From contig VJWM01000063.1 of the NCBI GenBank assembly GCA_010909165.1, forward strand, positions 496,001-560,000: a stretch of DNA of 64,000 bases, given 5' to 3'. The DNA comes from Anthoceros angustus (lineage: Eukaryota; Plantae; Anthocerotophyta). Every line of letters starts with the position of its first letter. Position 1 is the stretch's first letter. The notes below the pieces were generated by a model. It was given only the letters and a program-made list of their open reading frames with translations. It was not told the DNA's origin and did not search any database. Positions 12,690-55,460 of this stretch are shown in pieces. Position numbers and translations under genes: made by a program.

Positions 12690-13485
12690 GGGTACCCAAG
12701 TTTTGGAGGAGGGGAAGCAGCTTCATGCGCAAATCAGAGAACGGGGCCATGAAGCTGATGCTTTTGTAGCCAACATTTTGGTGAACATGTATGCAAAGTG
12801 TGGCAGCGTAAAAGACTCCCAGTGAGTTTTAATGTGCTTGGACGACTGGGTGTGGTGACTTGGAATGCCCTGATAGACGGGTGTTCCCAGCAGAGCGTGG
12901 GGCAGGAAGCCTTTCATCTCTACAGGAAGATGTCAGCAGAAGGCATGGCCTGACCTATTTCTGTGACATTTGTTTGCCTCCTGCAGGCATGTGCAAGTTA
13001 AGGCAGCTCAGCCTTGGAGAAGGGGAAGCAGCATCATGCTCAAATTAGAGAACAATAATCTCAAGATGATGTGTTTGTGGCCAACAGTTTGGTCAACATG
13101 TATGCTAAGTGTGGCAGCCTGGGAGATGCTCAGAGACTGTGTAACGGACTTGGTCAAAAGAATGTGGTGAGAAAGCTGCCCAGAATGTTGATGGACTTGG
13201 TCACAAAAATGTGGCGACCTGGAACGACCATGATAGCAGGGTATTCGCAGCAGGGCATGGGGCAGGAAGCACTTCATATGTAGACTGGCATGCAAGACGA
13301 AGGCATGGCTGCACCCATTTCTGTGACATTTATGTGCCTTGTACAGGCATGTGCAACTGTGGGCACCTCAGCTTTGAAAACGGGGAAGCAGCTTCATGGA
13401 AAAATCAGAGAACACGTACATGAAGCTGATATGTTTGTCGCTAACAGTCTGGTCAACATGTGTGCCAGCGTGGCAGCCTGTGTGG
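12690..13485 (+). pseudogene. PLS-class PPR pseudogene fragment
   Basis: Repeated motifs GKQLHAQIRERGHEADAFVANILVNMYAKCGS, FVANSLVNMYAKCGSLGDA, TMIAGYSQQGMGQEAL, MQDEGMAAPISVTFMCLVQACA; stops and frameshifts; runs into the satellite. Confidence 0.88.
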
Positions 13486-14386
13486 CAGGGCAGGGCAGGG
13501 CAGGGCAGGGCAGGGCAGGGCAGGGCAGGGCAGGGCAGGGCAGGGCAGGGCAGGGCAGGGCAGGGCAGGGCAGGGCAGGGCAGGGCAGGGCAGGGCAGGG
13601 CAGGGCAGGGCAGGGTGGGGCAGGCAGGGCAGGGCAGGGCAGGCAGGGCAGGGCAGGCAGGGCAGGGCAGGGCAGGGCAGGGCAGGGCAGGGCAGGCAGG
13701 GCAGGGCAGGCAGGGCAGGGCAGGGCAGGGCAGGGCAGGGCAGGGCAGGGCAGGGCAGGGCAGGGCAGGGCAGGGGCAGCAGGGCAGGCAGGGCAGGGGC
13801 AGCAGGCAGGGCAGGGCAGGCAGGGCAGGGCAGGGCAGGGCAGGGCAGGGCAGGCAGGGCAGGGCAGGGCAGGGCAGGGCAGGGCAGGGCAGGGCAGGGC
13901 AGGGCAGGGCAGGGCAGGGCAGGGCAGGGCAGGGCAGGGCAGGGCAGGGCAGGGCAGGGCAGGGCAGGGCAGGGCAGGGCAGGGCAGGGCAGGCAGGGCA
14001 GGCAGGGGCAGCAGGGCAGGCAGGGCGCAGGGCAGGGGCAGCAGGGCAGGGCAGGGCAGGCAGGGCAGGGCAGGGCAGGGCAGGAGCAGGGCAGGGCAGG
14101 CAGGGCAGGGCAGGGCAGGCAGGGCAGGGCAGGGCAGGGCAGGGCAGGGCAGGCAGCAGGGCAGCAGGGCAGGGCAGGGCAGGGCAGGGCAGGGCAGGGC
14201 AGGCAGGGCAGGGCAGGCAGGGCAGGGCAGGGCAGGGCAGGGCAGGGCAGGGCAGGGCAGGGCAGGGCAGGGCGCAGGCAGGGCAGGGCAGGGCGCAGGG
14301 CAGGGCAGGGCAGGGCAGGGCAGGCAGGGCAGGGCAGGGCAGGGCAGGGCAGGGCAGGGCAGGGCAGGGCAGGGCAGGGCAGGCAG
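13486..14386 (+). repeat. (GGGCA/GCAGG)n pentanucleotide satellite, ~900 bp (about 180 units)
   Basis: Directly visible tandem GCAGG with occasional GCAG/GCAGGG variants. Confidence 0.98.
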
Positions 14387-14640
14387 GGCCTTCGACAGGC
14401 AGGGCCTTCGACAGGGCAGGGCCTTCGAGGCAGCTGCTGCAGGCAGGGCCTTCGACAGGGCAAGGCAGGGCAGGGCCTTCGAGGCAGCTGCTGCAGGCAG
14501 GGCCTTCGACAGGGCAGGGCAGGGCCTTCGGCAGGCAGGGCCTTCGAGGCAGCTGCTGCAGGCAGGGCCTTCGACAGGGCAGGGCCTTCGACAGGGCAGG
14601 GCCTTCGAGGCAGCTGCTGCAGGTGCAGCTGCCTCGAAGG
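14387..14640 (+). repeat. Derived minisatellite: GCAGGGCCTTCGACAGG and GCCTTCGAGGCAGCTGCTGCAG modules
   Basis: Tandem 15-30 bp modules; mirrored in reverse complement at 16377-16570. Confidence 0.9.
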
Positions 14641-14788
14641 CTCCTTCACTAAACTGCCTGCACTGGCTTGAGGTCGAGGGCGGGGGAATAGCGGGAATGG
14701 CGCCACCGCTCCCTGCTCTTCCCAGTCCACAGCTGCAGGCTGCCTCGAAGGCTCCTGCTGCAGGTGCAGCTGCTTGAAGGCTCCTTTG

Positions 14789-14890
14789 ATACGAAGTAGC
14801 AAACTACGCTGCAAAACTAGTTTGCTGCAAACATAGTTTTGCAGCGTGGAGAGAGGGCATAGGTTTGCAGCGTCGTTTGCTATATCGTAT
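14789..14890. mobile_element. ~100-bp hairpin/MITE-like insertion
   Basis: Outer inverted repeat ATACGA..TAGCAAACTACGCTGCAAAACTA / TAGGTTTGCAGCGTCGTTTGCTA..TCGTAT; inner palindrome ACGCTGCAAAACTA-GTTTGC-T-GCAAAC-A-TAGTTTTGCAGCGT; TA flanks the GCAAAC...GTTTGC core; absent from the paralogous block at ~18060. Confidence 0.5.
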
Positions 14891-15196
14891 TAAACACACT
14901 TCATCAGCTCACACACACGCTAGCTCACTGCTCGCTGAGCTCGCTGCTCACTGCTCACGGGCTCGTGGCTCAGCAAGGGCGAGGGCGAAAGGCTTGGAAC
15001 CTCGCAGGAAGGCGGACCAGGTGTGTGCCGTGTCTTTGATGAAGTGTGTTTGATTCTTCGGTGCATTTCAGTGTCACCTAAACTTCACGGTGTTGATCGC
15101 AGGACTGGTGCTGCGGGCTCTTGGTTGCGCACCTGAGCTTGATCAAGGAGCACGCAAGCGGCCTGGCAGGGAGCGCGCGTGGGAGCTACTAGCGAA

Positions 15197-15820
15197 ATGG
15201 ATTATGTGATTCCGTGTGGATATTCTACCATTAGTGAGCGACTACCAAACCTCCGTTCCTGCCAGTGGCCGAATATTCATGTTCAATCGCCTGGGCGGGT
15301 TTCCTCTCCAGATGAAGTCCAAGCGGACAATGCATATATTCCGAATGCAACAGCTCGCGACATTCAAGTTCAAAGTGTCGCCACGGACATGGCTACATGG
15401 ATAGGAAGTGGAGTGGCGGGACGAGGTGAATTTGTCGCGATCGACATCGAGGATTGGATCGGACCTGAAGTGGAGACACAGGTGGAGAGTGGCCATAGAG
15501 TGCCAGCAAATCAGTTGGGCCAGGTAAAAGACACTGAGGTTAAGGATCTAATTAAAGTGGCAGGACTGATTGTTACACTTGGTGTTACGTTGTTACAAGG
15601 AGCGGCGGTACATGACAATGCTTCAACCAGATTTTGGTTGGTCTGCTTTCCGTGGGTCTTTTTCATTACAGTTCTTTTCGCATTCGGCTTGGTCATTTTG
15701 CTTTTCCATGACGGAACACTTCTATGTGCTGGAACTCTTGGCAATTGGATGCGATTGGTCATGATAGCAGTTATGGCTTTTGCCTTGTCGACGTGGGTAT
15801 ATTTTGTGCAAAGCAAGTGA
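15197..15820 (+). CDS. Uncharacterised 207-aa protein, polar N-terminus plus three predicted C-terminal TM helices
   Basis: ATG at 15197 (MDYVIPCGYS...), single open frame to TGA. Hydrophobic segments VAGLIVTLGVTLLQGA, FWLVCFPWVFFITVLFAFGLVILLF and WMRLVMIAVMAFALSTWVYFV. Several paralogous fragments in the window. Confidence 0.6.
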   Translation: MDYVIPCGYSTISERLPNLRSCQWPNIHVQSPGRVSSPDEVQADNAYIPNATARDIQVQSVATDMATWIGSGVAGRGEFVAIDIEDWIGPEVETQVESGHRVPANQLGQVKDTEVKDLIKVAGLIVTLGVTLLQGAAVHDNASTRFWLVCFPWVFFITVLFAFGLVILLFHDGTLLCAGTLGNWMRLVMIAVMAFALSTWVYFVQSK

Positions 15821-16087
15821 TGGTAGGAAGGGTCCAAGCCTGTTAGTAGTATGTCAAATTATAGATTAGAAACATTTGTTTTGTCTACCTCTGTTGTGTG
15901 TGTCGCCGCGTGCGCGGTTCTTTATGACTTGATTTATGTTTCACATCATCCATTCCGCTAGTAGCTCCCACGCGCGCTCCCTGCCAGGGAAGGTGAGCTC
16001 TGAGCTGAGCCACGAGCCCGTGAGCAGTGAGCAGCGAGCCCAGCGAGCAGTGAGCTAGCGTGTGTGTGAGCTGATGAAGTGTGTTTA

Positions 16088-16189
16088 ATACGATATAGCA
16101 AACGACGCTGCAAAACTATGCCCTCTCTCCACGCTGCAAAACTATGTTTGCAGCAAACTAGTTTTGCAGCGTAGTTTGCTACTTCGTAT
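16088..16189. mobile_element. Second (inverted) copy of the ~100-bp hairpin/MITE-like sequence
   Basis: Reverse complement of 14789-14890 within the right palindrome arm. Confidence 0.5.
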
Positions 16190-16376
16190 CAAAGGAGCCT
16201 TCAAGCAGCTACACCTGCAGCAGGAGCCTTCGAGGCAGCCTGCAGCTGTGGACTGGGAAGAGCAGGGAGCGGTGGCGCCATTCCCGCTATTCCCCCGCCC
16301 TCGACCTCAAGCCAGTGCAGGCAGTTTAGTGAAGGAGCCTTCGAGGCAGCTGCACCTGCAGCAGCTGCCTCGAAGG

Positions 16377-17053
16377 CCCCTGTCGAAGGCCCTGCCCTGT
16401 CGAAGGCCCTGCCCTGTCGAAGGCCCTGCCCTGCCCTGTCGAAGGCCCTGCCCTGTCGAAGGCCCTGCCCTGTCGAAGGCCCTGCCCTGTCGAAGGCCCT
16501 GCCCTGTCGAAGGCCCTGCCCTGTCGAAGGCCCTGCCCTGTCGAAGGCCCTGCCCTGTCGAAGGCCCTGCCCTGCCCTGCCCTGCCCTGCCCTGCCCTGC
16601 CCTGCCCTGCCCTGCCCTGCCCTGCCCTGCCCTGCCCTGCCCTGCCCTGCCCTGCCCTGCCCTGCCCTGCCTGCCCTGCCCTGCCCTGCCCTGCCCTGCC
16701 CTGCCTGCCCTGCCCTGCCCTGCCCTGCCCTGCCCTCCTGCCTGCCCTGCCCTGCCCTGCCCTGTCGAAGGCTGCCCTGCCCTGCCCTGCCCTGCCCTGC
16801 CCTGCCCTGCCCTGCCCTGCCCTGCCCTGCCCTGCCCTGCCCTGCCCTGCCCTGCCCTGCCTGCCCTGCCCTGCCCTGCCCTGCCCTGCCCTGCCCTGCC
16901 CTGCCCTGCCCTGCCCTGCCCTGCCCTGCCCTGCCCTGCCCTGCCCCTGCCCTGCCCTGCCCTGCCCTGCCCTGCCCTGCCTGCCCTGCCCTGCCCTGCC
17001 CTGCCCTGCCCTGCCCTGCCCTGCCCTGCCCTGCCCTGCCCTGCCCTGCCCTG
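16377..17053 (-). repeat. Right palindrome arm repeats: 15-bp minisatellite (16377-16570) and (CCCTG)n satellite (16571-17053, about 95 units)
   Basis: Reverse complement of the left-arm satellites. Confidence 0.97.
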
Positions 17054-17849
17054 ATTAGATCCTTGACCTTATTGTCCTTTTCCTGGTCCAACTGATTCGC
17101 TGGAACACTATGGCCACACTCTCCACCTGTGTCTCCACTTGAGGTCCGATCCGATCCCCGATGTCGATCGCGACACTTTCACCTCGTCCCGCCACTCCAC
17201 TTCCTGTCCAAGTAGCCATGTCCGTGGCGACACTTTGAACTTGAATGTCGCGATCTGTTGCATTCGGAATATATGCATTGCCAGCTTGGACTTCATATGG
17301 AGAGGAAACCCGCCCAGGCGATTGAGCCTGATTAGATCCTTAACCTCCTTTTCCTGGTCCAACTGATTCGCTGGAACACTATGGCCACTCAAGTCACTAT
17401 GCTTCAACCAAAATCTGGTTGAAGCATTGTCATGTCCCGCCGCTCCTTGTAACAACGTAACGCCAAGTGTGACAATCAGACCTGCCACTTTAATTAGATC
17501 CTTGACCTTATTGTCCTTTTCCTGGTCCAACTGATTCGCTGGAACACTATGGCCACACTCTCCACCTGTGTCTCCACTTGAGGTCCGATCCGATCCCCGA
17601 TGTCGATCGCGACACTTTCACCTCGTCCCGCCACTCCACTTCCTGTCCAAGTAGCCATGTCCGTGGCGACACTTTGAACTTGAATGTCGCGATCTGTTGC
17701 ATTCGGAATATATGCATTGCCAGCTTGGACTTCATCTGGAGAGGAAACCCGCCCAGGCGATTGAACATGAATATTCGGCCACTGGCAGGAACGGAGGTTT
17801 GCTAGTTGTCACTCATGGTAGAATATCCACACGGAATCACATAATCCAT
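17054..17849 (-). pseudogene. Minus-strand copy of the three-TM ORF family, truncated and internally duplicated
   Basis: ATG at 17849 (MDYVIPCGYSTMSD...), runs to ...GAAGHDNASTRFWLK. 17054-17325 repeats 17493-17764 (offset 439), with a third short repeat at ~17330-17388. Confidence 0.75.
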
Positions 17850-18516
17850 TCCGCTAGTAGCTCCCACGCGCGCTCCCTGCCAGGCTGCTTGCGTGCTCCT
17901 TGATCAAGCTCAAGTGTGCAACCAAGAGCCCGCGGCACCAGTCCTGCAATCAACACTCGTGAAGTGTGACACTGAAATGCACCAAACACACTTCATCAAA
18001 GACATGGCACACACCTGGTCCGCCTTCCTGCCAATCCGGTTCCAAGCCTTTCGCCCTCAAGCCAGTGAAGGAAGCCAGCGAAGGAGCCGTCGAGGCAGCT
18101 GCAGCTGCAGCTGTGGACTGGGAAGAGGAGGGAGGGGTGGCGCCATTCCAGCTATTCCCCCGCCCTCGCCCTCTATCCAGTGAAGTGAAGGAAGCCAATG
18201 AACTAAAGGAAGCCAGTGAAGGAGCCTTCAAGGCACCTGAAGCTGTGGACTGGGAAGAGGAGAGAGAAGTGGTGCCGTTCCAATTATTCCCCCGCCCTTT
18301 AACAAGCTAGTGCAGGAAGCCAGTGAAGGAGCCTTCGAGGCAGCTGCCTCGAAGGCGCGCCTTTTCCGTGCGACTGCCTTGTCTGTCAGTCACATACGAA
18401 CGCGAAGCCGTGTTTTGCCGTATTTGGCCGTGTTCTGCCCTGCCCTGCCCTGCCCTGCCCTGCCCTGTTCCAGACTGCCACACAGGCTGCCACGCTGGCA
18501 CACATGTTGACCAGAC

Positions 18517-18816
18517 GTCACGTTGCTACAAGGAGCGTCAGGAGTCCTGACGCTCATTTTGACCAACCAAATTCTGGTTGAGCCATTGTCATGTCCTGAC
18601 TCAGGACATGACAATGGCTCAACCAGAATTTGGTTGGTCTTCTTTCCGTGGGTCTTTTTCATTACAGCCCTTTGCGCGTTGGGGTTGGTCATTTTGTTTT
18701 TGCATGACGGAAAAGTTGTGAGTGATGGACCTCTCAGCACTTGGATGCGATTGGGCATGATAGCCGTTGTGGCTTTTGCCTTGTCGACGTGGGTAGACTA
18801 TATGCGAAGCAAGTGA
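18517..18816 (+). pseudogene. 5'-truncated diverged paralog of the three-TM ORF (TM region), with an in-frame 63-nt footprint insertion
   Basis: VTLLQGASG[21 aa]HDNGSTRIWLVFFPWVFFITALCALGLVILFLHDG...WMRLGMIAVVAFALSTWVDYMRSK*, same stop position as 15820. Confidence 0.72.
18533..18639. other. Hairpin-type DNA transposon excision footprint (hAT-like, inferred 8-bp TSD GTCAGGAC)
   Basis: Two perfect hairpins with 1-nt apices: GAGCGTCAGGA-G-TCCTGACGCTC (18533-18555) and 39-bp arms 18561-18599 / 18601-18639 with apex C at 18600; 5-nt filler ATTTT. Confidence 0.75.
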
Positions 18817-19529
18817 TGGCAGGAAGGCTGCAAGGCTACAAGGCTCACAGAAAGAAAGTGGCGGACAGCAATAACGATAGCGCCACAGCTTTGTAGCATT
18901 CCTGGGTAGGTGTCACCGTCCAAGCCTGTTGGTAGTATGTGAAAAAATAGACTAGAGACAATCCCTTTGTCTATCTCTCTCGTTGTGTGTGCCGCGTGCG
19001 GTTAGGAAATTGGTATTGCAATAAGGTCGAGCGACCACGATCACCGTTGCCCAAAACAAGCAGAGTCACATCCCTCCTTCCCAAAAATCAAGCCAAAACT
19101 CAAAGAAGTTGAGACCGTAGGAGGAACTGAGGCAGTTCTCAGGTTGTCAAACCGGTTGCCCGGCACACCGGATCCGGAGGATGATGGCACTCGTGCCTGC
19201 CTTAACTTGCATCACCTATCCACAGGTTGTCCCTAGTATGCAGTGTAGTGTAGTGTTGTATACAGCATTCCTGGGAAAATACAATTCTTCGTCCTTCTTC
19301 TCCCTGCGAACATATCTTCCAAGGGAGGAAAGAACTTTGAGTCAGGGCAACACACATCAAGGTCACCACATCACACAGCATGATGCATAATATAGCATGA
19401 CCAACATCGATCTACATAAACACTGAGATCACAGAGTACGCAGTCAGGCTGGGAATCAAGAATCCAGTCCTTGCAGAGCCGTGGGAGAGTCTGTTGTTGA
19501 GTGGAACGATTGGACTGGCACTGTACGCA

Positions 19530-27665: not shown

Positions 27666-30600
27666 CTAAACATCTCTGATAATTTTCTCAGCCCCATGGA
27701 TGCGCAGTGTTGTTGATGCTTGACGGAGCTGAGTGCCTTGGTCGGGATATCTCGCCATTTGCTCTGGACAATACAAAACTTCTAATTTACCATCTTTAAC
27801 CACTTTTCGGATGAAATGAAATTGCACTTCAATGTGCTTGGTGCGCGCATGGAACTTGGGATTATAGGTGAGTGAGATGGCGCCTTGGTTGTCGCAGTAG
27901 AGAGGTCTTGGCAAAAGTTGCACTTCTCCCACCAAAGTTGGAGCGTTGCCAAAGTCCCTCCTTGCTAGCATGTGTTAATGAGTGCATACTGTGGAGCTTA
28001 AGGCTACAACTTGTTGCCGCTTGCTACTCCAGCTAGTGGTCATCCCTCCTAGCGTGTATACATAGCCGATGCTCCTCCCGAGGCCATGATCTCCAGCCCA
28101 ATCAGCATCACTGAATCCTTGGAGTTGGAGAGGCTCACCTGGCTTGGTGGATGACTGATATAGAAGTCCCATGTCAGAGGTGGATCTAAGATATCTGAAG
28201 ATCCGCTTGATGGCCTTCCAGTGCTGTTGTGTAGGAGAGGACAAGAACTGGGAGAGAGCTCCCACTGGAAAAGCGAGGTCTGGCCTGGTGCAAACCATTA
28301 AATACATAAGGCTGCCGACTGCTGAGGAGTAAGGAAAGTCATTGGAGTTGAGACTTTCACTTGAGTCTTCGTCTGCCTTAATGAGCTTGAGATTCACTTC
28401 CATTGGTGTGGAAATGGGTTTAGAGTCGACATGTTATACTTAGATAGGACCTCATGAACGTATTTGGATTGATGTATTAATATGCTTCTAGATTCCTGCG
28501 TCTAACTATAATTCCTAGACAATAAGATAGGTCCCCGCATGTGGTCATAGCAAAACGTTTCGAAAGCATTGACCTGGTGTCTTCTAACATAGACTTGGAA
28601 TTGGACATAAGTACTATGTCATCTACATATACGGCAAGAAGAATGAAGTGGTTATTCGATCTATTGATATAGATATTGCTATCAGACTCTAGCTTAGCAA
28701 ATCCTAGTGCTTCTAGGGTTTCATCTAGCTTAGCATACCACTCCATAGCACTTTGTTTTAATCCGTAAAGTGCCTTCAATAATAAGCAAGTATTGTATAG
28801 TCTCCTGTCAACCTTTAATCCTTCAGGTATCTCCATATAAATGGTATGTTGGAGGTCACCATAGAGAAAGGCAGTTTTTATGTCCAGTTGCATGAGTTCA
28901 TAGTCATGATGAGAAGCTAGTGCTATGAGGGTTCTAAGTGAGGTGATCTTAAGTACTGGACTAAATGTCTCATCATAGTCAAATCCGTATTTTTGTGAGT
29001 AACCCTTGGCCACTAATCTAGCCTTATACCTTTCTATGCCGCCATCGCATTCAACTTGATTTTAAATGTCCACTTAGACCCTACAAGTTTTCTTCCTGGT
29101 AAGGTAGTAAGGGTCCAAGTTTTATTGGCTTTTAAGGAGTCTAACTCGACTTGATTGCTATCTTCCAATTTTCTCTTTCGGGCATGTGATGGCTTCCGAT
29201 AGTTAGCTGGGACAAACTGATCAATTGCGGCGGATAGGCAGTAAGCTAAAGTGTTTTTAGGATCTCTCCAATTAGTGGGTGAATATCTACGTATCTGACC
29301 TGCATTGCTACGTTGAGTGCGTCTTCCTCTTGTGTCGGGGATATTCGATGGCTGTGTTACATTTGCATCCAAGTCCTCAGGGTCAATGTCTTCATTTCCT
29401 AATAGGTCTTGAAGTTGTGTGGTATCCCTGGAATTATGTATATTAGATATACCATAAGAAATCTGATTCTGCTTGCTTGAGTGCCGATGAAATGAGATGT
29501 TTGAGGAAAGCGATGAGAAGTGGTCCGAAGTATGCGGTATGGGTCGAGCGCGAGCCACGGGTTGCCGGTGGCGATGTGTTGATCGCGCTCCGATGTGCAC
29601 GCGCGGTGAGTCTGCGCTGCCGGCGATGAAGTCGCATGCCTCGCGCACGATCCGGAAGGTAGTCATCTCGGTCTTCGCGTAATTGCTCGGCTAGACTCGG
29701 ATCTGCTTGTCCCGTCGCTCAGGGCCGGGATCGCGAAGGCCCGAGGGGCGGTGTGAGGGAGGCCGCAAGCGTCAAGTCAAGGTCGCCAAAGTGGATGGCT
29801 GGGCTCGAGGCTGGTTGTGCGGGTGTAGGAGGAGGCTGAAGTGGCTGCTGGAAAGGTGGAGGCTGGGCTAGGATAGGTGCAGGGGGAGCGGAGAGGTCGA
29901 CGACGGCCTCATCGTCGTCGCTGCTGTCAGGGTGAGGAGGAGACAAAGGTGTGAGGGCTCCCACTGCAGGGGGACCCGACATGTCCTCAAGAAAGGTAAC
30001 ATCCCTGGAGTGTGTGATGCGGTGAGTGTGAGGGTCCATAAGCTTGTAGCCTTTAATCCCAGCGGTGAAGCCAATGAAGAGGTAACGGCGGGCTCTATCA
30101 GCTAATTTGGTGCGAGTGGCCTTGGGGACGTGTGCATAAACAGGGGATCCGAAGACTCTAAGGTTGGAGAGGTCGGGTTTAGTGCCAGTCCAAGCTTCAT
30201 AGGGTGTCTGGTTGGGCAAGGCGGAGGTCAGTGTCCTGTTGGTGAGGTAAACAGCATGAGACATAGCTTCAGGCCAATAAGTCCGAGGGAGGTTGGCGTG
30301 GATAAGCATGGTAAGGCCACGATCCTGTACTGTCCTGTTCATCCTCTCGGCAACCCCGTTCTGCTGAGAAGTGTGGGGGGTTGTAATTTGTCTCACAATA
30401 CCAGATGTGGTGCAGAACTGCTGGAACGCATGAGAACCGTATTCACCTCCGCCGTCTGTGCGAATACATAAGAGGTGTGCGCCTGTTTGTTTCTCGGCCC
30501 AGGTCTGGTACTCTTGAAAACATTGTAGAGCTTGTTGCTTGTGCTTGAGGAGGTAGAGAACTGTGAATCGGGTGAAGTCATCAATGATTAGCATGAAATA

Positions 30601-32956
30601 GAGATAGCCGTGGATGGATCGTTGAAAAGGGCCGCAGAGGTCAGAGTGCACTAATTGCAATTTGTCGGTGGCTCTTGTGGCAGGGCCCTTGGGGAAAGGG
30701 GTACGATGACTTTTCCCAATAGTGCAGGCTGGGCAAATGCCGAAGTCTTCAATCTTCGTGAGGGGAAGACCAGTCGCTGCAGCTGTGGAGAGGGTTGCCT
30801 TCATCCTTTGTAGATTCATATGTCCCAAGCGTGCATGCCAGAGGAAGGTCTGACGTTGAGAAAGAGTTTGGGTGTGGGCAGAGAGGGAAGAGGGTGGGGC
30901 TTGGGGTGAGGTGACGTTGAGATGGTATAGGTCATCTTGCTGCAGGGCCCCTGTAGCGAGGAGTTCCCCTTGAGGGGTTTCAATGATGCAGCGACCGTCT
31001 CCGAAGCAGACATAGCAGCCGGATTCGTCGATTTTGCGGACGGAGAAGAGGTTTTTAGTGAGGCCCGGGACATGGAGGACATCTGTAATCTGAAGGGTGG
31101 AGGCGGGCTGCAAGGTGATTTCAACGGAACCCTGGCCATGTATGAGATGCCGGGTATCATCTCCAAGGCGATTGAGGTGGGGAGGCGGGGTGGAAGTCTG
31201 TGAAATAAGTGAATGGGAGTCATGTGTTGGGATGCCCCGGAGTCTATGTACCAAGTATGAGGGCCCTGGGCTATGAAACAGAAGCGACAAGGGCGAGAGG
31301 GTCATGGAGGTATGTGAGGTACGCCTTGGCATGTCGTCGCATAGTGATTGCGAGTTGTCCAAGAGGGTCGTCTTGAAGATTGGGTGTTGACCATGGATAA
31401 ACGTTTCCGCATTCCTCATAGGTGTGGCCGGGTATCTTGCAATAACCACAAGTAGGCCTCAAGTAGGGTTATATTGTCCTCGCCTCTGGGAAAGTTCCTC
31501 GGCCTCGTTGAAGTTGTCCGCGTGAACGGCCTCGCCTCAATCTTCGTGAGGGAAGACCCGGTGCAGTGGAGGGTTGCCTTCATCCTTTGTAGATTCATAT
31601 GTCCCAAGCGTGCATGCAGGAAGGTCGGCGTTGAGAAAGAGTTTGGTGTGGGCGAGAGGGAAGAGGGTGGGGCTTGGGGTGAGGTGACGTTGAGATGGTA
31701 TAGGTCATCTTCTGTGAGGTTCCAGGGGTTTCAATGATCGTGACCGTCTCGGCGGACATAGCGGGGATTCGTCGATTTTGCGGACGGAGAAGAGGTTTTT
31801 AGTGAGGCCCGGGACATGGAGGACATCTGTAATCTGAAGGGTGGAGGCGGGCTGCAAGGTGATTTCAACGGAACCCTGGCCATGTATGAGATGCCGGGTA
31901 TCATCTCCAAGGCTGACGTATTGAGGTGGGGAGGCAGGGTGGAAGTCTGTGAAATAAGCTGAATGGGGAGTCATGTGTTGGGATGCCCCGGAGTCTATGT
32001 ACCAAGTATGAGGGCCCTGGGCTATGAAACAGGAAGCGACAAGGGCAGAGGGCTGTGAGGTATGTGTGAGGTACGCCTTGGCATGTCGTCGCATAGTGAT
32101 TGCGAGTTGTCCAGTAGGTCGTCTTGAAGATTGGGTGTTGACCATGGATAAACGTTTCCTGCATTCCTCATAGGTGTGGCCGGGTATCTTGCAATAACCA
32201 CAAGTAGGCCTCCAAGTAGGGTTATATTGTCCTCTGCCTCTGGCTGGGAAAGTTCCTCGGCCTCGTTGAAGTTGTCCGCGTGAACGGCCTCTGCCTCTGA
32301 ATCTTCTACCAGTGAAGTAGGCGCTAGAGGTTGTATCCCCTGCGAAGGAATTATTGTGGAGTTTTCTTCTGGCCTCCTCAGTCAGCATTGCGCTGATGAC
32401 TTTGTTAACGGTGAGGGGCTTGACACCTTGTAGGGATTGGACCACGCTCACCCAGGATTCCGGCAGGGTAGAGAGCAAGAGGGCGGCGGAGAGGTCCTCT
32501 GAAATTGCGAATCCTGTCGCAAGGAATTTGGTCATCCAGCTCCTGAAGTTTATGGTATGATGATCTACTTGGTCCCCTTCATTCATCCTTAATCCGAAGA
32601 AATTCTTGATGGTGTGCACCGTGTGCATTATGTCTGTAGATGCGTAGATATCATGGAGCTGGGTCCAGGCTTGGGCAGCGGTTTCGACTCCAGCGATTTG
32701 TTGTACGTTTCCTGACCGCATGGATTGCATAATAATGTTTTTCGCCTGTTGGTTCTTGTCTTCCCAATCTTCTCTTTCCGCTTTCGGGCTGAGGCACCAG
32801 GTTGTGCTGACTATCGGGGTTGCCTATGCCCCCAACGTAGGCCCATAGCTTACGTTCCTTTAGTATTTCAGTGATTCTAAATTTCCAGACGGCGAAGTTA
32901 TGCTGCTGTCCGTCGAAACGATCCTCCTTTGATAGGCTGATGGAAGAGCCTGACAT
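27666..32956 (-). CDS. Copia gag-pol (frameshifted as assembled)
   Basis: gag start MSGSSISLSKEDRFDGQQHNFAVWKF; zinc knuckle CGYCKIPGHTYEEC; protease TWYIDSGASQHMT; LWHARLGH; integrase LVHSDLCGP / IRTDGGGEY / QQNGVAERMNRT; RT QLDIKTAFLYG / YVDD; RNase H SDADWAGD / CDNQGAI. Confidence 0.9.
30758..32306 (-). repeat. Internal ~0.78 kb tandem duplication in the Copia (knuckle-protease-pre-integrase)
   Basis: CGYCKIPGHTYEEC and the DSGASQH/DVLHVPGLTKNLFSVRKIDES region each occur twice; junctions share GAAGATT (AATCTTC at 30751, 31539, 32300). Confidence 0.88.
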
Positions 32957-53200: not shown

Positions 53201-55460
53201 GAGCTTTCGGTCCTTTTTGCACTTTGTTTAAGCTGTCATCCAGGTAAATGGAGAATTTGTCACCGTGACACCAACTGGTTTCTCCTAGTGCATGATTGTA
53301 CCTTTACTGCTAATGTTTCTATTGTGCAGGCTGAGAACGCAATTGATCGAATGGATTGGATGGACAAGATCACTGGAGTGATTGCCTCCCTTTTGAACTC
53401 TCAAGTGACAGACCAGGTAATGGACAAGCCCACAAATTACCGTCCAAATCTCCAGCACCTGAATTGAGCATGATGATAAATCATGTTGGGACTCAGTGGA
53501 ATCCTAGAGCTGCAGTAGAATGTCCGCACATCTCAGAAAACGTTGTGTTTACTTCAGAGACCTCCTCGGAGTCCAATGCTCGGGCACAATCGCACGGCCA
53601 GTGAGAGCAGCTCTGTGGGCTCGGATTTTGACCATGTGACGCTGGATGAGAGGGGCCATTATTCAGCCCCTCGGCGTGACCCCTCTTCCCGGGGCATGCA
53701 ATTGACCTATCCTGGGCATGATTATCATGAGAGGCCCCTCGACATTTTGAGGCGTGTAGCCGGGAATGATGTGTGTGCAGACTGTGGGGCCCTAGATCCA
53801 GATTGGGCCTCCCTAAACTTGGGTATTCTTGTGTGTATAGAGTGCTCAGGTGTACACAGAAACCTCGGGGTTCACATTTCCAAGGTATTGTACACCTTCG
53901 TTTTCCTTTTCTGCGTGATTGAGCCTTCACCTGGTGGAGAAATATCTCTTCTCTCCGTTCACTGATGCCTGTACTGGTTCATAGGAAATGTGGGATCAAT
54001 TTTATTGAAATCAAACGAATTTATAGGCGGAAATGCTTTGAGTGGACTAACAGTTTGAATGGTTTTTTTTTGGGTACAGATGCGGTCGTTGACGCTGGAT
54101 GTGAAGGTGTGGGAACCTTCAGTTATTGGATATTTCCAATCCATTGGCAATCAATATTCAAATTCAATATGGGAGGAGCTTCTTCCACGGTGGGAAAATG
54201 ACCGAAGGGCTCGAAGTGCATCAACTGGTGGCATACTAGATAGGTGTATATTTGATATACACCTATCTAGCATAATTTTTTTATATTATATTTTATTAGA
54301 GTGACATGTGTACTAGTGTTCGTGTCTTTTATGCTGATGCCTTAGCAGAATTTGTGCTAACCCTGTCTGTGGTCTGCTGAGCAGAGCTGCTGACAGACCC
54401 TCTGTGGATGTACTCAGAGTGAAACCAGATGCAAGGGATCCACTTCCGATCAAGGAAAGGTTTATTCAAGCTAAGGTAGACTCATATTGTTGAGGGCTTC
54501 TAATGAGCAATTTGTTTGCCTGTTTGTGTGTTTGTCTATTTTCATCTTTTCTTGCTCCGGTTCCTTGCACATTGCTGATTCACTTTGCCCCCAAAGAAGC
54601 AGAAAAGTGGCTGGTTACTGAAGCAAGGTTATCGATGTGAAAGTCTGATAATATTCTTTGTGGGCAGTATGTGGAGAAGAGGTTTGTGCAGAGGCTGAAG
54701 TACGATCCTAGAGGTCCAACGGTGGCAAGAAGCATGTGGGATGCAGTTCAAGAGGGTAATAAGCAGGTTGTACTTCGTCTGATAGTCACAGCAGATGGTG
54801 ATGTAAATACCACGTATGAGCAAGCAATGGCTGCCGAAGGATCTCCTCTTCTGCGTGGATCAAGCGGAGCTAGAAAGTTCCTGGATATGTCCAACAGCAC
54901 CAGGAGCAGTTGGAGTGGCCCCATCGGTGTTGGCTCCACCTCCCCCTCCTTAGTGCATTCCCGGTCGGTTGCCTCTTCACTCACATCAAGCCCTGTCTCT
55001 AGGACTGTGGCTAATGTCGCGGCGTCTAATGCTTTCCTGAAAATTGAAGTGGAGAAGGATATGCATGGGTGCACATTGCTTCACTTGGCCTGCCAGATGG
55101 GTAATCTGTCTATGGTTGAGCTGCTTCTTCAATACGGGGCTGCAGTCAATGCTACCGACAGATTGGGAAGGTCACCGCTTCACCATTGTATTCTATATGG
55201 CAAAAATTACTGTGCCAAGTTGCTGCTATCCAGGTATTCTCCCAAGCTAAGCAAATCTGTAGTGTGATGTGGATTCAGTTGTCCTGCTCTGAGACTTTTG
55301 GTATGAGAAGAACGATTATGATTCATTCTGTACTTGCAGAGGAGCTGACCCTTCAGCTGTGGATGGTGGAGGAAAGACTCCACTGGAGAGTGCTGTGGAG
55401 ATTGGTGCTATTACGGACGAGGAGCTGTTCGTCATGTTGGCAGAATCCTCGCACAGCTAA
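50221..55460 (+). CDS. ARF-GAP with BAR-PH-ArfGAP-ankyrin architecture (AGD1-4/VAN3 class), multi-exon
   Basis: [15 protein letters not shown]; [25 protein letters not shown]; [39 protein letters not shown]; Arf[40 protein letters not shown]; ankyrin [10 protein letters not shown]; ends LAESSHS*. Confidence 0.95.

Follow-up and report, generated by a model that had tools for sequence, protein, structure and literature searches.

The orphan ORF family and its rearranged surroundings

A 64-kb window of a hornwort genome, which is the whole stretch of DNA analysed here and is eukaryotic and plant-like in content, contains a small family of orphan ORFs in copies that we term A, B and C (Table 1). 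Copies A and B run without interruption across the site under study and serve as references for it, and copy C is the focal copy. No significant Pfam family was found for copies A, B or C, a word search with the 97-amino-acid focal ORF and the 213-amino-acid paralogue returned no homologues, and a protein atlas offered no convincing neighbour, all scores being below 0.9. Copies A and C have diverged by ~15%. Their 10 synonymous and 24 non-synonymous differences correspond to a dN/dS of ~0.67, and constraint on the host ORF, as judged from these sequences, appears weak.

The surroundings of the family are extensively rearranged. Two pentamer satellites (13484-14389 and 16564-17053), made up of ~184 units of (GGCAG)n and ~99 units of its complement, lie on either side of a kilobase-scale inverted repeat with 99% identity between its arms (14599-14974 versus 16004-16379), an arrangement by which an array of PPR-gene fragments appears to be split. 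Copy C is abutted on its left by an inverted copy of the junction between one such fragment and the (GGCAG)n satellite. The neighbouring repeat parts of this segment are 68-91% identical to their partner, compared with complete identity over the 42 unique nucleotides. The boundary at 18516/18517, 28 nt to the left of the left apex described below, is apparently a separate and recent rearrangement junction. In copy B, on the minus strand at 17404, there is a 439-bp tandem duplication with 99% identity (17054-17334 and 17493-17773). Farther away, a Copia-type LTR retrotransposon occupies the minus strand at 27975-32730, with its gag, integrase and reverse-transcriptase ORFs split across frames.

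Table 1. Features of the interrupted site, the orphan ORF family and the adjoining junction, in coordinates of the 64-kb window.
Feature	Position	Strand	Basis or remark
Paralogue A, full-length 213-codon orphan ORF with hydrophobic C-terminus; uninterrupted reference	15179-15820	+	
Paralogue B, 5′ part of the family; second uninterrupted reference across the site (17404-17460)	17404-17956	-	
Inverted copy of the PPR-gene fragment/satellite junction at 13447-13503; abuts copy C at 18516/18517	18455-18516	+	42 unique nt 100% identical
Focal copy C, 3′ part of the family only	18517-18837	+	
ORF of 97 codons in copy C, reading through the 63-nt scar	18523-18816	+	No ATG start
Left flank, original sequence of copy C; ends in target copy GTCAGGA, 18537-18543 (7 of 8 bases)	18517-18543	+	Collinear with paralogues A and B
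Left apex base G, complement of the lost eighth target base C	18544	+	GTCAGGAC on minus strand at 18544-18551; simulation
11-nt inverted copy of left flank 18533-18543 (palindromic 'P' addition)	18545-18555	+	100% complementary, 1-nt spacer; not in paralogues
Filler ATTTT linking the two processed ends	18556-18560	+	No local or window-wide template for junction words
39-nt inverted copy of right flank 18601-18639 (palindromic 'P' addition)	18561-18599	+	100% complementary, 1-nt spacer; not in paralogues
Right apex base C, complement of the lost first target base G	18600	+	GTCAGGAC on minus strand at 18593-18600; simulation
Right flank, original sequence; begins with target copy TCAGGAC, 18601-18607	18601-18639	+	Collinear with paralogues A and B

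Two perfect palindromes and a duplicated octamer

Within copy C, two perfect palindromes of the form 11+1+11 and 39+1+39 stand side by side, linked by five nucleotides. Each has a single unpaired base at its centre, and none of the 50 paired positions is mismatched. The inverted flank copies of 11 and 39 nt and the ATTTT between them are exactly as the original prediction had described. Across the whole window there are five perfect palindromes with arms of at least 10 nt and a loop of at most 4 nt, three of which fall within 18331-18639; five shuffles of the sequence produced none with arms of 11 nt or longer, and chance does not explain the palindromes. When folded as single-stranded DNA, the segment 18520-18650 has an energy of -60.4 kcal/mol, against -14.5 +/- 2.8 kcal/mol for shuffles (z = -16).

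Two further palindromes in the window are set apart from this pair. A perfect 13+13 palindrome without a spacer lies at 18331-18356. Its arms recur in paralogous units (for example at ~16340-16380) with a short spacer between them, so that the palindrome looks like an older satellite inverted repeat that has undergone an internal deletion and does not resemble a second transposon scar. The other, at 54236-54270, has perfect 16-nt arms and a 3-nt loop, lies beside an AT-rich stretch and is without a paralogue for comparison.

Comparison with the paralogues distinguishes the original sequence from the added sequence. Paralogues A and B can be followed collinearly along both outer arms and contain nothing that corresponds to the inner arms or to ATTTT. 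Copy A (15584-15841, plus strand) and copy B (minus strand, ~17404-17460) each contain a single GCGGCGG(T/G)ACAT, at the place where the focal copy reads GCGTCAGGA ... TCAGGACAT. If 18544-18606 is deleted, so that 18543 is joined to 18607, copy C aligns without gaps to A over 258 nt and to B over 58 nt. The net gain at the site is thereby 63 nt, and a single ancestral target, proposed earlier from the paralogues, is supported by this alignment.

The duplication of the target can also be read from the locus itself. Read on the opposite strand, 18544-18551 and 18593-18600 each give the complete 8-mer GTCAGGAC, and the direct strand keeps a 7-nt copy on each side. Since both inverted arms contain the complete 8-mer, the 8-bp duplication is demonstrated independently of the paralogues, in each of which the homologous hexamer occurs once. 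The occurrence of GTCAGGAC at both pivots as 7 nt in direct and 8 nt in inverted orientation means that each flank carried the same 8-mer, one strand retaining seven of its bases and the other all eight. The replacement of the inner base of each target copy by its complement (GTCAGGA-G and C-TCAGGAC), which had been noticed at the outset, is borne out by G 18544 and C 18600. The complete lack of mismatches at the 50 paired positions, set against the ~15% divergence of copies A and C, dates the event as recent relative to the duplication of the family.

Such features bear on the trustworthiness of the sequence itself. A fold-back chimeric read or a polishing error might be expected in a repeat-rich region, and the long satellites and kilobase-scale inverted repeats of this cluster are hard to assemble. 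In a fold-back chimera, however, the entire molecule is fused to its reverse strand, which does not leave palindromes of 23 and 79 nt within otherwise collinear sequence; nor would an artefact yield an exact 8-bp duplication with apex bases that conform to transposase chemistry. We therefore regard an assembly or sequencing artefact as highly unlikely.

Probable transposon excision and competing accounts of the scar

In the hairpin model of hAT excision, each chromosomal end is left with a one-base overhang, after which a hairpin forms by joining of the top strand to the bottom strand (PMC2921059). The asymmetry of seven and eight bases on the two strands, seen here at both flanks, is what this model predicts. 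Applied to copy C, the model would begin with the insertion of an element in the 8-bp target GTCAGGAC, which would duplicate the target. On excision, the transposase would nick each flank 1 nt outside the element, and the freed 3′-OH would be joined to the opposite strand, so that each chromosomal end would be sealed as a hairpin with seven target bases on one strand, eight on the other and one unpaired base at the apex. Host enzymes would then open both hairpins 3′ of the tip, which is the Artemis-type side, cutting the left one 11 nt and the right one 39 nt away from the apex, and each flank would thereby gain an inverted copy of itself. Finally, the two long self-complementary 3′ tails would be joined with five extra nucleotides (ATTTT) and filled in, for the net gain of 63 nt. 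Biochemical work on Hermes by Zhou and colleagues in 2004 reportedly established both the position of the nick, 1 nt outside the element, and the strand on which it is made.

This scheme was simulated from the inferred pre-insertion sequence with its 8-bp duplication. Flank hairpins recessed by 0, 1 or 2 nt were opened in either arm on either side, and the products of the 12 resulting models were compared with the exact sequence of 18500-18680 (181 nt). A single model out of the 12 reproduced it exactly: its hairpins are recessed by 1 nt, both flanks are nicked 3′ of the tip, at 11 nt (left) and 39 nt (right) beyond the apex, and the 5-nt filler is added. Blunt hairpins (offset 0) and hairpins with a 2-nt recession failed, and the other three polarities gave the wrong apex bases. 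At 18544 G replaces C and at 18600 C replaces G, in agreement with the 1-nt offset expected from published footprints (PMC5873905, PMC2921059). The target also has T at its second and A at its seventh position and so fits the nTnnnnAn consensus at which Hermes makes its 8-bp duplications (PMC10368747), which is weak evidence as the fit would arise by chance in ~1 of 16 cases.

The failure of the blunt model bears directly on other transposon superfamilies that make hairpins on flanking DNA. A Mutator-like element would account for an 8-bp duplication, since Muta1 forms hairpins on flanking DNA and makes duplications of 8-9 bp (PMC5499845). The Muta1 flank hairpin, however, is blunt, of 43+43 nt and without a recessed base (PMC5499845), and a blunt hairpin leads one to expect a palindrome of even length, whereas both palindromes here are of odd length with one apex base. 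In addition, MULE excisions in yeast are mostly precise. We consider an element of this or another flank-hairpinning superfamily very improbable as the source; Transib, with a 5-bp duplication, and CACTA or Harbinger, with a 3-bp duplication, are misfits with the 8-bp duplication.

An origin without any transposon, through repair of a break or a stalled replication fork by template switching, with two strand switches each yielding a reversed flank copy, would suit a region that is so rich in inverted duplications and junctions. It would also suit the position at which the longer arm ends: the right flank holds a natural 17-nt quasi-palindrome (18620-18636) just inside the end of the inverted copy, and the 39-nt arm extends 3 nt past it to its outer end, at a place equivalent to the breakpoint in copy B. 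Fold-back inversions, moreover, do form at breaks (PMC7467729). Against this account, two independent switches and a filler would be required, each beginning without microhomology and precisely on the base that comes next in the same-sense strand, and the 8-bp duplication with its seven-to-eight asymmetry at both pivots would not be predicted. Hairpins of self-primed single strands have loops of at least 3 nt (median 3-4 nt; PMC7467729), compared with the 1-nt apices observed here. On this evidence we judge template switching quite improbable, even if the local fragility of the cluster of inverted repeats and satellites might have contributed to the scar.

Several simpler variants were also considered and rejected. 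A single template switch would yield one contiguous reverse segment, with the inverted segments in the opposite order to that observed. Self-primed fold-back or snap-back synthesis does not suit loops of 1 nt, inverted copies that start from the very next base and pivots with neither microhomology nor a prior inverted repeat, and self-priming from the quasi-palindromic target GTC-AG-GAC predicts a different product. Insertion of a tiny element is likewise not tenable: the 57-nt insert is bounded by direct copies of one 8-mer and lacks inverted ends, and its parts are copied from the flanks.

We return to hAT excision as the reading that we favour: the locus is probably the donor-site scar of a cut-and-paste transposon of the hAT type. 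The insertion and excision of such an element had been proposed originally, and the proposal gains support from the 8-bp duplication, the 1-nt-offset model and the fit to nTnnnnAn, with the scar itself pointing to the superfamily. No hAT element or transposase fragment was found in the 64-kb window, whose ten longest ORFs contain only Copia gag, integrase and reverse-transcriptase domains. A window-wide scan for an element with terminal inverted repeats and an 8-bp duplication gave only palindromic 8-mers inside the large inverted repeats. The indels between paralogues included no other short footprint of the hAT kind, and exact words from the right flank had no match among metagenome contigs.

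Proposed opening of the hairpins and significance of the scar

The hairpins in question would have been processed in one of two ways. The long arms could stem from a single distal nick, for example a cut of the Mre11-Rad50/COM1 type, and could equally stem from a cut close to the apex, after which the 5′ strand is resected and the 3′ end extended with its own strand as template. The two routes give the same product and are indistinguishable by sequence. The original prediction had both hairpins opening to 3′ overhangs unusually far from the apex; the simulation upholds the 3′ polarity, and the distance does not follow from it, since opening near the apex with resection and self-templated extension leads to the same product. 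Artemis:DNA-PKcs also cuts hairpins 3′ of the tip, at a distance of 1-4 nt (PMC2175297); the scar shares this polarity, but at a much greater distance from the tip. Failure of normal opening gives rise to P nucleotides of unusual length, and Mre11/Rad50/Nbs1 has been proposed as an alternative nickase (PMC2193825).

Local structure may have influenced where the cut or the extension stopped on the right, as the quasi-palindrome and the breakpoint of copy B both lie close to the arm end, which we offer as an observation and not as an explanation. The copy B duplication has its junction at ...TTTGGTTG, no more than 3 nt from where the 39-nt arm would have its outer end if projected onto that copy, and breakage or strand switching may have recurred at the quasi-palindrome CAACCAGA(A/T)TTTGGTTG. 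For the filler ATTTT, a search with junction words found no template either locally or anywhere in the window. A near match at ~18503-18513 (CATGTTGACCA, 10 of 11 bases) and GGTTGGTCATTTT at 18683 were set aside as misfits in orientation or sequence.

Among known systems, the scar most resembles the footprints of Ac/Ds and other hAT elements in plants and yeasts, in which the 8-bp duplication is kept, additions are centred on the complement of the element-adjacent base and filler is occasionally present (PMC5873905, PMC2921059). Arms in plants are usually 1-5 nt. Arms of at least 3 nt occur in 20-30% of footprints in Arabidopsis and in 47% of those in Saccharomyces cerevisiae, where the longest arm is 20 nt, and arms in Candida albicans do not exceed 3 nt (PMC5873905, citing Lazarow 2012 and Huefner 2011). 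The 39-nt arm described here is about twice the longest reported arm that we found, and it occurs with an 11-nt arm in one event, with both fully retained. The present case differs also in being a natural, fixed scar whose element is no longer in view. The scar is an extreme instance of known palindromic hAT footprints, with no new mechanism.

Other systems share parts of this behaviour. V(D)J coding joints with long P nucleotides, as in scid or in deficiency of DNA-PKcs or Artemis, likewise come from hairpin-sealed ends opened 3′ of the tip and have palindromic and non-templated additions (PMC2193825, PMC2175297). RAG hairpins, in contrast, are blunt, without a 1-nt recession or a target duplication, their P tracts are 1-7 nt in Artemis-null cells with longer ones rare, and the setting is the vertebrate lymphocyte and not the plant germ line. 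Muta1 excision shares the flank-hairpin intermediate and a target duplication of 8-10 bp (PMC5499845) and differs in its blunt 43+43 nt hairpin and its mostly precise excision; the blunt model misses the present sequence. Fold-back inversions at resected breaks also duplicate a flank in inverted orientation at the break, with involvement of the Mre11/Sae2 pathway (PMC7467729). They use short inverted repeats that are already present, have loops of at least 3 nt and produce inversions on the scale of chromosomes, whereas here the apices are of 1 nt, no prior inverted repeat exists at the pivot and the product is a local insertion of 57 nt.

The original prediction also held that the net gain of 63 nt adds 21 codons in frame without a stop. 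The arithmetic is correct, as the ORF at 18523-18816 attests; the significance attached to it is not sustained. A 63-nt insertion that keeps the frame open is expected by chance in ~1 of 8 cases (1/3 x (61/64)^21). Copy C is a truncated orphan with no in-frame ATG upstream, and its homology to the family starts only at 18517, at the rearrangement junction; for these reasons the in-frame 21 codons very likely have no functional significance. The ORF that carries them probably does not work as a gene, and the biological consequence at the locus is likely nil. On the minus strand, 18390-18758 is also an open frame, of 122 codons, that passes through the scar and encodes nearly the same peptide segment (..NQILVEPLSCP..) owing to the palindromes, so that ORFs across palindromes are no evidence of coding.

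The importance of the scar lies instead in what it preserves. One fixed sequence records transposase chemistry unusually cleanly, including the 8-bp duplication, the hairpin recessed by 1 nt and the side on which each hairpin was opened. If read as an excision scar, it implies that a plant germ line can open or extend hairpin-capped ends up to 39 nt from the tip and still rejoin them. In the hornwort lineage, hairpin-sealed breaks might even be opened routinely tens of nucleotides from the tip, for example with Mre11/COM1-type clipping as the default over Artemis/SNM1-type opening at the tip, an idea that we regard as unlikely. Were distal opening routine, transposon excision would be a regular source of long perfect palindromes, which could lengthen peptides in frame or give rise to hairpin-RNA loci. 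The scar would, in addition, indicate fairly recent mobility of the hAT type in this hornwort genome.
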